Shown piece by piece: positions 50,601 to 55,451 of a stretch of DNA of 64,000 bases (position 1 is the stretch's first letter; every line of letters begins with the position of its first letter). The stretch comes from Auanema rhodensis. Lineage: Eukaryota > Animalia > Nematoda. Made by a program: the position numbers and the translations under genes. The notes beneath the pieces were generated by a model. That model saw only the letters and a program-made list of their open reading frames with translations. It had not been told where the DNA came from and ran no database searches. The stretch is from positions 7,254,001 through 7,318,000 of the forward strand of contig OZ059895.1 of the NCBI GenBank assembly GCA_964057225.1, written 5' to 3'.

Positions 50601-51255
50601 CTTTTTCTCAACACGAACAAAAACATTTATAGATGATTTGTTTGTACCACACCATTCTGCTTTGATTGATCAGTGTAAAACATCTTCAAAGGATGTATCT
50701 GCGTTGGGTTCAGCTTACAGGTCAGGCTCATAATACATGACGATATAATGATTTAATCAATATCGCTATCATCGTTTTTCCGTGCTGACGATCATGCTAA
50801 AGATTACAAACATCTGTGTAAATGAACGACCTTTTGTTTTCCCACAAGCAAGAATTTACGTGGTGGCATGACGATGAAGCGGCTGATCCCATGTTTTAGA
50901 TGAATGTTTGTTCTTTTTTCAGAGAAATGCTCGAAAATATCCATGGGGATATGCTGTCAAGCAAGATTACGGAAACTGTTGCCAAATTTTCTACATTTTA
51001 TAATGGAGTGTCAAATAAGACCAGCAAGATAGCGGGAAGAGCTGGTGGGTTAATGCAGTGCATATTGTTTTTCTGCTCGTTCGTTTTAGATCTTATCATA
51101 TAAAATTTGATTATTGATAAGACCATAGCGCGGAGACAAAGAAATGTCGACTAAAAAGTATACGCGTCATTTTTTCAGCACATCTAGCTGCAGTAGAAGA
51201 CGACATTTTCATCGAGAAACTTCTATCTATTTCAGCTTTGAGATACTTTGTATAA
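47633..51255 (+). CDS. FAM135-family protein with C-terminal putative lipase (DUF676) domain
   Basis: N-terminal FNVDISNKGYYQ|IRL; C-terminal HLIILVHGLEG, FLMSSSNQ, SFIAHSMGGVIVR, SINSPHMG, KIAGRA|AHLAAVEDDIFIEK. Confidence 0.88.
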
Positions 51256-51435
51256 ATTAATAAATTATTTGAACCTGAGGTTTCTACATGATTTTTATTC
51301 GGCCTTTAATGCAGAAAAAGATACAATAGAGAGAAAAAGGGCCAGTTAGATCGCAAGGATTAGATCAACCGCATTACTACAGTTTCAAGAATAGACGAGA
51401 GTTTGCTGATGAAAAGAATAAAGCGAGGTTTAGGC

Positions 51436-52040
51436 TTAGATAACGTAAGACATGGCAAAATATTTAGAAGTATCAATAGTCTCTGGAGTGGCATCTGGAG
51501 AGAGAACACGGAAACCAATGTAACGCAATGTACGAGGGAATCCATGTTCGATAGTATTTGAAGACTTCTCAAAAAGAGCTAAGACTCTTTCCAAGCCTTA
51601 AACAAATAATGTAATTATATGTTTGAAACTTTAGAAACTCACCTAAATCCTCTTCGCAGTATTCAAGCAAAGCGACAAAGCGCTGCTTAGATACAGCTAA
51701 AGGATCTTGAGATGATGGAATGACGATAGCAAGAGACTTTTCATCTGCCATACCCCACAACCATTCTTTTGAAACAGCAGCTACACGAGTTGATACCTAA
51801 AATTAGAAAATAGAGTGCTACAATACATAAAAAAATCTCACATCGTTCTTGCGACTTTCAATGCATGGGGGGACGTCAAAAACACCATCCGACCGCGGTG
51901 CCGCCGGTCTCACTGCTAAAAAAAAGAAGAATACATTGATCAAAATGATAACAAGTTATTATAAAATGCTGGTGTTCTTATGAAACTTACGTATTAAAGG
52001 ATTTACTGGAATTAGAATTACTTGAAATACTTGTAGCCAT
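51436..52040 (-). CDS. oaz-1: Ornithine decarboxylase antizyme, expressed by +1 programmed ribosomal frameshift
   Basis: ORF1 MATSISSNSNSSKSFNT|SETGGTAVGWCF ends TGG TGT TTT TGA (51887-51876). The +1 frame reads DVPPCIESRKND|VSTR...SKQRFVALLEYCEEDL|GLERVLALF...RTLRYIGFRVLSP...YFAMSYVI*, the antizyme domain. Confidence 0.95.
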
Positions 52041-52119
52041 TATAAATTCAGAATTGGAAGCGAAGAGAGAAAAATCAGTTGACTGACTGGTGAATGTGCG
52101 GACGGCCGTCGCGCCGCGC

Positions 52120-52127
52120 TTTATATA
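52120..52127 (-). promoter_or_regulatory. TATA box of oaz-1, within the GC-rich oaz-1/mat-1 divergent promoter
   Basis: Minus-strand TATATAAA followed by a GC-rich spacer and CATTC/TCAGT Inr-like sequences about 25-40 nt downstream. A TCTGCGTCTC motif lies at 52139. Confidence 0.6.
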
Positions 52128-52608
52128 CACTATGGTTGTCTGCGTCTCCTTGTGCCCTACACTCTCTATCTAGGTATCGACTCACTCAGCTGCGCGTTCT
52201 CACGCGCGTAGAATGAAAGGAGTACGGTAGTTTTGGAAATATTCCAAATTCCAGTATTGATTTTCTGTTTACCGTTGTTTATTTTCTTACGATTTTATCG
52301 TAGCGACTACATTGTCCTTAATTCCGGTTTTGGGATACGTCATAGACGATCGGTTCAGCTTCTGGGTCCAGAAACGATGAGATAGACCGTTTAGCTTGCC
52401 GAATCATGATGAAACAGGTCAAATTAGAGATACGCAAATGATTTGCCTATATAGGCGTCGTTTAAATTATGGGTTTATCATTATTCTTGATATCAATCGT
52501 ATAATTTCGTATTACTCTTTATTTAGTTTTTTCTTTAACACTAATTTTGTATTAGAAATATTATTTTAGAAAGGGTCTTAAAATCAGGGATTATATAAAT
52601 ATTTGGTA

Positions 52609-55451
52609 ATGTCATATTCAATTTTTGACGACATACCTCGAATAGACGGGTGTCCATCTTCACAAATTAAGGTAATTTATGATCAATTTTGTTTGTGTAT
52701 ATATATATATTTTTTTTTTAGTTTCTTATTCAAAGATATATCGAACATTTAATATTTGAAGATGCTTTGTTTCTGTCTGAATTACTATATGAACGAGGTG
52801 CTTATATCCTAATTTCTCATCTAAGTATTCAATTCTTTTCAGTGAAAACAGAAGAAAATCTTGTTATTCTGTGTGATTGTTTATTAAGACTATCTCGTAT
52901 TGATGAGGTACAATTTCTTTTTACATAATAATTTTATCGCTTGATGTTTTATAGGTTTACAATCTTTTAAAGCCATTGCCTAGGGAATTACCACATCTTC
53001 GCTACATTTTTGCTAAATGTTGTTACGATTTACAAAAGTATAATTTTCTTTTTTATTAATTTTATTAGTTCTGTTACAGATATGAAGAATGTGAAAACAC
53101 CTTATTAAACGAAAACCTTGAACTTCATGCTTCTATACGAGATTCCCCGTCTGCTCCGTTTGCTCGTCTGCTTTTATCGAGTATTTTCACGTGAGTTTCC
53201 TATATGATTTGCTTCTTGTGTATAAGAGGTTTCGAACTTTTGGTAGCTATTTTTTATTTTAGAGAGACAGGCAGAACTGAGCAATCAGTAGCTGAATGCG
53301 CTAAGGCAGTAAGAGCGAATCCCTTTTCTTGGTCTTCAATAACATCTTATATTAGAGTAGAATTTGACTGTTTTTTTCTAATTAATCGTTTTTATTAAGG
53401 TTGGTGGTAAAAAAGTTGCAGAATTAGTTGCGGAAAACGACGGATTAACGAAAGTATCCGATAAAGATGTTTCTTTAAATACTCCATGTGAAGATGATAA
53501 AACGGTAACCCCTGTAATTTTGTGCCCTGTTCCTAAAATTGGCATGGGAGCACCTAAAAAGTCGAGAGTATCAGAGGTACAATTAAGCATCATATTTCAT
53601 GACAATAGCTTGATGCAGGTCACAGAAACCAGGCGAAGTTCTCGTTTGGTTAATCAAGATAGAGAGAATGTTGGTGGTACTGTTTCGAGAGTTAGTGCAC
53701 AACCAAAGACAGGAAAGGTTGGTTCTAATAAATGCCATAGAATCCCATGGAAAATTTTCAGTTACGTGCTTTAACTCGTAATGACTTAACTCCAACAGTT
53801 ATTAGTACTCGGTCAGAACGCACTTCAACTTCCAGGTTTACTTTTGTCAATTTCCGCTTTAACCTTTTAATTCAAGAAAGTCGCGTGATGCGAAACAACC
53901 ACTGGCTTCTCGAAGCTCTAATGCTATGAGGTCGTTATCTTCATCTTCTACTAGTGTAGCATCTATATCAACATTATCAACCTCTGATAAAGAAGCAGTT
54001 GAGGAGTGTGTTAAAACTGTGAATCCTCTAAGTCCTTTAACTAGTAAGGTATAATGTGTTTATGCTTTAATTGTACATTACTTGAAGGGGAAATATACGG
54101 CAACATCAAGATTCTGTCAGCAATCGAAGAAGCAGTTAGTACTTATAAATGGACTGAAGCTGGAAATTTAATAGGTTCCCTCATTTAAATGAAAATTTTT
54201 GTAACCACTCAAATGTCTTTAGGAACATTGCCAAGTTCTGTGAAAGACCATGCTATTACTTTACATTTACTAGCCAGAATGAAGTTCGAACAAGCAGAGT
54301 ATGCTGCTGCTAGAGATATAATTCATAAACAGCGACAAATGTTTCCTCATAGATTGGAGGTATAAGAGAAAATTTGTTAATTATTGTGTACAAGCCATAT
54401 ATGTTTAGGGGACTGAATTATTGTCAACTGCTTTGTGGCATCTACAAGATAATTACCGCCTTTCTCAACTTGCTCAGGAGTTATGCACTAAAGCACGTAG
54501 GAGACCTCAGACTTGGTGTGTGGCCGGAAATTGTTTCTCTCTTCAGCGTCAAGTAAGACTAAATGTGTTGCCGTTTTTATAAAAGAAACTTCAGCATGCT
54601 CTTGCTGTGGAATGTATGGAGAGAGCAATTCAGTTAGACCCACATTTCGGATATGCATATACCCTATTAGGACATGAACTTGTTTTCCAAGAAGAGTTAG
54701 ATAAAGCTGCAAAAGCTTTCAGGTATTTCAGAATCCTGAAAATAGTATAACACACATATGGTTCAGAACTGCTTTGAGCATAGCTCCCAATGATTATCGA
54801 GCTTGGTATGGTCTTGGACAAGTTCATCAGAGAACGGAACAACTGCCTTTAGCTCAGGTTTTTATCTATAATTTTTGAATATTAATTTATTATTTAGCAT
54901 AATATGTCCGAAGCGCTATCAATTAACCCAACTAGTCGTGCCATTCTATGTACTTTAGCTCAAGTTGAACAAGCACTTAATCGTCCAACTAGAGCTATGG
55001 AACTCTTGAATACGGTAGTAGTTCCGGAGTATTAACACTTCTCAATGTAATGATTGTAGGCACTCCAACTAAATCCTAATGATGTAGCATGTAGATATAA
55101 TCGAGCAAGATTACTATATGAGATTAAGCAGTAAGTATTATTTTGCTTCATCTTCCAATAATATGTAATTGTAGGTATGATAAGTGTCTTAAAGAGTTGA
55201 ATGAGCTCAAAGGACTTTCACCGGATGAAGCACATATATTCCATCTTTTAGGTGAGTTCAATAATCATATATTTAAAATATCTCCAACTACTTCAGGCAA
55301 AGTACACCGGCGTTTGGGGAATACTCATACTGCTCTTATAAATTACAGTTGGTCTTCTGAGATGGATGCCGGTGGCGAGCAATTACTTGCTCATGCCGCT
55401 GGGGGAGAAAATGCTTATGATGATGATTCATATTCTCCTGAAGCCGATTAG
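52609..55451 (+). CDS. mat-1: APC/C subunit CDC27/APC3 (TPR protein)
   Basis: FEDALFLSELLYER, PHRLEGTELLSTALWHLQ, PQTWCVAGNCFSLQRQH, FGYAYTLLGHE, DYRAWYGLG, LGKVHRRLGNTHTALINYSW. Confidence 0.93.

Follow-up and report, generated by a model that had tools for sequence, protein, structure and literature searches.

How is a gene decoded when its spliced reading frame closes after 29 codons and its protein domain lies in another frame? The question is raised by a minus-strand locus in a 64 kb stretch of Auanema rhodensis DNA (the window; the whole stretch that was analysed), in which a programmed +1 ribosomal frameshift site had been proposed at 51842–51915. This segment is very probably exon 2 of a single-copy ornithine decarboxylase (ODC) antizyme gene, the orthologue of oaz-1, decoded by +1 frameshifting. 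The mechanism, the UUU-UGA variant of the site and its occurrence in the nematode clade are already known (published 2000–2007), as is an in vivo sensor (2026).

Reading of the sequence together with the spliced model gives an antizyme gene of four exons on the minus strand, 52040–51436 (Table 1). ORF1 opens at an ATG in good context (ATAATGG; A at −3, G at +4); exon 1 ends at 51991 and is followed by a GTAAGT donor. Exon 2, which coincides precisely with the interval named in the initial annotation, is bordered by an AG acceptor (51917–51916) and a GT donor (51841–51840). The 29 sense codons of ORF1 are spread over exons 1 and 2 (translation MATSISSNSNSSKSFN-T-SETGGTAVGWCF-stop, with the tail AVGWCF) and end, exactly as had been read, at TTT-TGA in the spliced exons (51881–51876); the minus-strand letters here are TGG (51887–51885), TGT (51884–51882), TTT (51881–51879), TGA (51878–51876) and C (51875). 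In the +1 frame exon 2 translates as DVPPCIESRKND and stays in phase through exons 3 and 4, which yields an ORF2 of 116 codons from GAC (51877–51875) to TAA (51438–51436). The upstream end of this frame is a TAA overlapping the ORF1 ATG, and its first ATG in the spliced model is codon 27 of ORF2. This is the layout of an antizyme +1 frameshift gene, a short AUG-bearing ORF1 followed by a domain-bearing +1 ORF2 that lacks a start of its own. The two translations predict the junction peptide that had been suggested for detection, ...GWCF/DVPP....

Table 1. Positions of the antizyme gene features in the window.
Feature	Position	Strand	Remarks
TATA box TATATAAA	52120..52127	-	in block conserved with L001; putative promoter element
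Exon 1, coding part	51991..52040	-	ATG 52040–52038, first 16 codons + 2 bases; border 51991/51915 backed by 4 runs
Intron 1	51916..51990	-	75 nt, GT..AG; contig joint 51915->51991, 4/4 runs
Exon 2, frameshift cassette	51842..51915	-	74 nt: ORF1 tail, shift site and first 12 ORF2 codons
G+C-rich 5' block, candidate stimulator	51888..51915	-	71% G+C; anchored alignment
Core site UGG-UGU-UUU-UGA	51876..51887	-	module A (UGG-UGY), P-site codon UUU 51881–51879, ORF1 stop UGA 51878–51876
ORF2 codons 1–12, +1 frame	51842..51877	-	GAC 51877–51875 first; C 51875 directly follows the stop
Intron 2	51797..51841	-	45 nt, GT..AG; contig joint 51794->51840 (cut +2), 4/4 runs
Exon 3	51643..51796	-	ORF2 codons 13–63 + 1 base; N-terminal half of ODC_AZ domain
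Intron 3	51597..51642	-	46 nt, GT..AG; contig joint 51595->51642 (cut +1), 4/4 runs
Exon 4, coding part	51436..51596	-	C-terminal half of ODC_AZ domain; stop TAA 51438–51436
3' UTR	51283..51435	-	AATAAA 51299–51294; longest contig ends 51283

The identity of the product was examined with the exons searched one at a time, and these were joined only for local translation, folding and dN/dS. Exon 4 matches the Pfam family ODC_AZ (PF02100) with 26.9 bits against a cut-off of 24.2 (E = 4.7e-6, profile positions 60–113 of 114), and exon 3 lies just below the same cut-off of 24.2 with 22.1 bits (E = 1.5e-4, profile 23–57). The two matches are consecutive in the profile, with the split Gly codon spanning the two missing positions, and both are in the +1 frame, the only frame in which the domain had been expected. 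No in-frame ATG precedes it, as the initial annotation had also stated: the exon 3 match begins where the first +1-frame ATG stands. Searched exhaustively with phmmer, exon 4 gave 16 proteins, of which 14 align to antizyme sequence. Those with a name are ornithine decarboxylase antizymes (Caenorhabditis remanei, C. brenneri, C. tropicalis, C. japonica, C. angaria, C. briggsae and Nippostrongylus brasiliensis), and the Mesorhabditis spiculigera matches are partial entries without a name. Exon 3 is 59% identical to residues 30–80 of the N. brasiliensis antizyme, and exon 4 aligns with residues 83–132. A homologous-protein search with exon 3 (51 aa), subject to length and word limits, gave no match; neither did a PDB sequence search at E up to 1 with exon 4, a short and divergent query. 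No paper naming both Auanema and antizyme was found in a literature search. By analogy with known antizymes, the product would lower ODC activity and polyamine uptake.

The gene is expressed and spliced as modelled. Transcript data consisted of assembled contigs from four runs (four samples, one study) whose RNA nature was guessed; they were mapped to 51100–52300, with one contig of 590–670 nt per run. Each of the four skips exactly 51916–51990, 51797–51841 and 51597–51642, with CT..AC ends on the plus strand; contigs that lack introns at canonical borders must derive from spliced RNA. Over 51840–51915 the contigs of all four runs carry no other letters and no gaps, so that TTTTGA is kept in the mRNA, a point that the initial annotation had asked to be confirmed. 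These contigs represent the dominant form, in which rare isoforms and indels are hidden; in this form the stop is retained as expected of a frameshift gene, and neither a transcript with one T fewer nor a splice form removing the stop was seen in any of the four runs.

For comparison with relatives, homologous DNA was placed in an ungapped alignment with the ORF1 stop as its anchor. Six sequences form a UUU-UGA group: the window; L001, a Logan contig and the closest relative; C. angaria; C. remanei (two assemblies); a JGI metagenome contig pair; and N. brasiliensis. All share an invariant GGA-UGG-UGU-UUU-UGA, followed by Y, G, Y and CCC, and always at the junction of ORF1 and ORF2. The core GGAUGGUGUUUUUGA thus stands at the same antizyme position in C. 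remanei, C. angaria, N. brasiliensis, L001 and the metagenomic relative, and the cassette GGAUGGUGUUUUUGA-Y-G-Y-CCC is without variation across the relatives of this group; the comparison with nematode antizyme genes proposed beforehand places the same site at the same place in five other species. Module A, UGG-UGU (51887–51882), directly adjoins the shift codon and is likewise invariant in the group. The 15 nt around the junction do not vary across genera, synonymous positions included. The window (64 kb) contains the 13-mer TGGTGTTTTTGAC a single time; with at most one mismatch, 0.16 matches would be expected by chance. Judged from these sequences, conservation of the shift site is well beyond chance.

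A second group reads UCC-UGA and consists of M. spiculigera (L002) and three metagenomic contigs (L010–L012); the site is UGG-UGC-UCC-UGA-C in three of the four and UGU-UGC-UCC-UGA-C in L012. Conservation of the 12 nt UGG-UGC-UCC-UGA in antizymes has been described, and both UCC and UUU are tabulated as shift codons for Nematoda (Ivanov and Atkins, 2007; PMC1874602, Table 1), so the UUU-UGA of the window (51881–51876) uses a codon given for the phylum. That nematodes have UUU-UGA in place of UCC-UGA, as the initial annotation put it, holds for this gene and for the C. elegans clade; as a phylum-wide rule it is too broad, because M. spiculigera, which NCBI places in the same family as Auanema (Rhabditidae), keeps UGG-UGC-UCC-UGA. 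For the same reason the change from UCC to UUU seems to have happened inside Rhabditidae. The ancestral UGG-UGC-UCC-UGA-C site of M. spiculigera lies at L002:3095–3106 (GCA_958295435.1). Its ORF1 starts with MSTSILSNSSK, similar to MATSISSNSNSSK in the window, and a second antizyme copy of 130 residues, which may be a haplotig, is found on another contig.

Alignment of the window to L001 for identity and dN/dS shows how selection is distributed over the locus. Identity is 88% in exon 2, 75% in exon 3 and 70% in exon 4, against 40–54% in the introns. The 12 ORF1 codons of exon 2 show 0 non-synonymous and 4 synonymous changes in frame 0, and ORF2 has a dN of 0.149 with dS saturated (pS 0.70); the counts underlying all the frame-specific values are small. 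The frame that appears to be protein-coding is frame 0 up to the site and frame +1 beyond it, which supports a change of frame rather than proving it. The switch falls exactly at UUU-UGA-C after UGG-UGU, where the initial annotation had put the frameshift site of the antizyme gene.

ORF1 might instead be an ordinary regulatory uORF, the antizyme being made without frameshifting, by leaky scanning or reinitiation at the AUG of codon 27 or at a non-AUG codon. Reinitiation is possible after short uORFs of some 30 codons. A +1-frame AUG exists 27 codons past the site, the Pfam match of exon 3 begins there, and gene callers pick such internal starts in C. remanei. Nevertheless, the stretch of 27 codons that separates the stop from this AUG evolves as protein (dN 0.10, dS 0.80 against L001) and contains D-V/A-P and AAVS..W motifs conserved in all relatives, whereas the Met of codon 27 is absent from relatives, being Ala or Gly in N. 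brasiliensis, C. remanei and M. spiculigera. That the AUG-less codons are protein-like and the AUG is not conserved argues against both an independent initiation of ORF2 and a pseudogene. The 15 nt at the junction are also invariant across genera, synonymous positions included, and C. elegans oaz-1 has been shown by experiment to be decoded by +1 frameshifting (PMC13222480). Translation of ORF2 from its own start is accordingly considered very unlikely.

Two further explanations would remove the frameshift from decoding altogether. One T of the T5 run could be a sequencing or assembly error, or the gene a pseudogene with a real frameshift mutation; homopolymer runs are error-prone, and the C. 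briggsae assembly (L006) has an aberrant homopolymer at the same site. Against an error, contigs of four independent samples match the window at every base of exon 2 and an identical TGGTGTTTTTGA is present in assemblies or contigs of five other species; against a pseudogene, ORF2 is expressed and under strong purifying selection. This explanation is extremely improbable and can be regarded as largely refuted already. A minor splice form or an RNA edit might otherwise take out the stop and join ORF1 to ORF2 in frame, and assembled contigs do drop rare variants. Each of the four runs, however, gives a single joined form with three canonical introns; exon 2 and its borders, with the stop inside, are conserved in L001 and N. 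brasiliensis; and no stop-removing isoform is known for any antizyme (PMC1874602). We give this possibility hardly any weight, and +1 frameshifting at UUU-UGA remains the preferred reading.

Under +1 frameshifting, ribosomes would initiate at AUG 52040 and read the 29-codon ORF1 until tRNA-Phe sits on the P-site UUU (51881–51879) and the A site holds UGA-C, a slowly decoded stop with poor termination. A fraction of them would shift one base forward rather than terminate. Because the run is U-UUU-U, five U, tRNA-Phe can re-pair in the +1 frame, and would do so perfectly with the +1 UUU. GAC (51877–51875) would then enter the A site to be read as Asp, and 116 further codons would complete an antizyme of 145 residues. 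If C. elegans and mammals are a guide, the shifting fraction would rise with free polyamines (chiefly spermidine), and the antizyme would lower ODC activity and polyamine uptake, closing a negative feedback loop. Both the frameshift with its mechanism and the polyamine stimulation in this species are inferred here. C. elegans oaz-1 shows +1 frameshifting that responds to spermidine in vitro (PMC13222480); the gene serves as an in vivo polyamine sensor, and its knockout leads to higher polyamine levels (PMC13222480).

The shift is probably stimulated by the weakness of the UGA-C stop and by primary sequence conserved on the 5' side of the site. A C after UGA is the weakest and rarest termination context in C. 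elegans, and in the worms of its clade, where the site is always UUU-UGA and module B is absent, the conserved 5' sequence runs about 34 nt past module A (PMC1874602). The G+C-rich block 5' of the site in the window is a candidate stimulator by analogy with these descriptions (Ivanov and Atkins, 2007; PMC1874602). In L001 the first 15 nt of the block recur unchanged, synonymous positions included, and the UCC-UGA relative L010 agrees at 12 of these 15; the final 10 nt of the block, CGCGGUCGGA, are identical in Nippostrongylus.

Searches for a structured stimulator gave no comparable candidate. The fold of exon 2 carries no structure signal (z = 0.53), nor do 60–150 nt of spliced mRNA 3' of the stop (z from −0.65 to 0.81, mononucleotide shuffles). 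A long-range CCCCCC...GGGG pairing in the minimum-energy fold was rejected as no better than shuffles. A 5' hairpin was rejected as well: the 34 nt that precede the shift codon have z = 0.08 in the window, and the nine sequences compared have no hairpin register in common. An Rfam scan of 51200–52300 with E up to 10 gave only unrelated sub-threshold matches; the best of these, to snoU49 on the other strand, reached 23.7 bits (E = 0.046) where the gathering score is 35, and was rejected. A vertebrate-type 3' pseudoknot was thus not detected by Rfam, in the exon 2 fold or in the spliced 3' folds, which is expected because descriptions of C. elegans-clade antizymes have none. With no RNA structure stimulator found, the efficiency and regulation of the shift cannot be argued from structure.

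By eye, the 5' block of the window is closer to the strongylid sequence and to the UCC-UGA contig L010 than to the two Caenorhabditis sequences, a likeness common to strongylids and this one UCC-UGA relative. It is conceivable, though rather doubtful, that 51915–51888 is a 5' stimulator particular to this lineage and separate from the ‘module E’ of Caenorhabditis, and that UCC was swapped for UUU inside Rhabditidae with the older element kept. If that were true, the group would be a natural experiment on the co-evolution of shift codon and stimulator.

Around the coding region, the alignment of the window with L001 keeps TATATAAAG and flanking blocks, and the remaining leader is about 40% identical. 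Within 52073–52140 the blocks kept in L001 are GGAGACGCAGA, TATATAAAG.GC.GCG and TCAACTGAT; the Mesorhabditis leader has TATAAAAGC, then CAGTCA repeats. The 5' ends of the contigs from three runs lie at 52118, 52144 and 52159, the latter two upstream of the TATA box (52127–52120), and the contig of the fourth run starts at 52075 with one differing letter. Within 51011–51262 on the plus strand there is a neighbouring gene with an intron at about 51045–51178, as contigs of runs X1 and X3 reveal by a loose end that matches 51011–51043; the 3' end of this gene, near 51262, is about 20 nt from the antizyme end at 51283, so that the two genes stand tail to tail. On the other side, 52955–53188 (plus strand) has weak tblastn matches (E = 1e-7 and 2e-6) to pieces of an ANAPC3/TPR (CDC27-like) gene. 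In both Mesorhabditis and Nippostrongylus such a gene is found upstream of the antizyme gene in divergent orientation, which suggests conserved microsynteny.

The warning that such a gene would be mis-annotated proved apt: every antizyme protein deposited for C. remanei, C. angaria, C. briggsae, N. brasiliensis and M. spiculigera is either cut short or wrongly modelled. The C. remanei model starts at an internal Met 9 codons past the site, and that of C. angaria runs in the +1 frame straight across the site from a non-ATG start. N. brasiliensis is represented by versions of 86, 133 and 166 residues, the M. spiculigera model is marked partial, and an Angiostrongylus entry is fused to a WD-repeat protein. 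In C. briggsae (L006:5039–5075; GCA_022453885.1, CP092624.1) the site has GGATGGTGTTTTT and then 15 C in place of the TTTTTGACGCCCCCC of C. remanei; ORF1 has no stop there, ORF2 is in frame +2 relative to ORF1, and the deposited protein of 177 residues avoids the site by splicing. Either the tract reflects an assembly error in a homopolymer, or it is a genuine strain variant, which would alter decoding.

The antizyme gene is thus out of reach of ORF finding and of standard gene callers and, given the truncated and mis-modelled entries of its relatives, should be curated as a +1 frameshift gene with a 145-residue product. Every testable defining sequence feature of the antizyme frameshift family is present. 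We regard the gene as a genuine further case of antizyme frameshifting, one that opens no new question and through which Auanema rhodensis has the antizyme arm of polyamine feedback.

Work on C. elegans oaz-1 as a frameshift gene is said to have been reported by Ivanov et al. in 2000. With the oaz-1 genes of the C. elegans clade the window shares the short ORF1, UGG-UGU-UUU-UGA-C and an ODC_AZ domain in the +1 frame (PMC1874602; PMC13222480), as well as a conserved primary sequence 5' of the site and the lack of a known 3' pseudoknot. The core nucleotides are those of C. remanei and C. angaria. Unlike Caenorhabditis, which has ..UCGUCG.CC..GCCUGGAGA.G.C at the same place, the window has CAGUGAGACCGGCGGCACCGCGGUC in the block 10–37 nt upstream, which resembles Nippostrongylus and the UCC-UGA metagenomic relative; and introns 37 nt before and 34 nt after the stop make the shift site part of a 74-nt cassette exon, again unlike Caenorhabditis. 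N. brasiliensis (L013, GCA_030553155.1) has 28 contiguous nt identical to the window, CGCGGUCGGAUGGUGUUUUUGACGUCCC, introns at the same positions on either side of the cassette exon and the same ORF1 tail AVGWCF; its ORF2 starts with DVPQC..RKDD, the common pattern being DVP.C..RK.D. It differs in the protein, which is only ~59% identical in exon 3, and is also without a frameshift annotation.

The +1 frameshift of mammalian OAZ1 was reportedly described by Matsufuji et al. in 1995. It too occurs at the last sense codon before UGA, with UGG-UGY on the 5' side and CG/UG-YCCC on the 3' side, in a gene for the same domain and a presumed ODC feedback. The mammalian gene differs in its P-site codon UCC, its 3' pseudoknot and its 5' modules B and C, for which no counterparts were detected here; UCC-U does not allow perfect +1 re-pairing, whereas the UUU-U of the window does. 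The bacterial prfB gene for release factor 2 (RF2), with CUU-UGA, is also comparable: it combines an autoregulatory +1 shift with a slippery NUU-U and a poorly read UGA, and re-pairing of the P-site tRNA is the accepted mechanism (PMC1874602). The protein is unrelated, however, the prfB site is aided by a Shine-Dalgarno-like contact of the upstream mRNA with 16S rRNA, and the sensor is RF2, not the polyamines.
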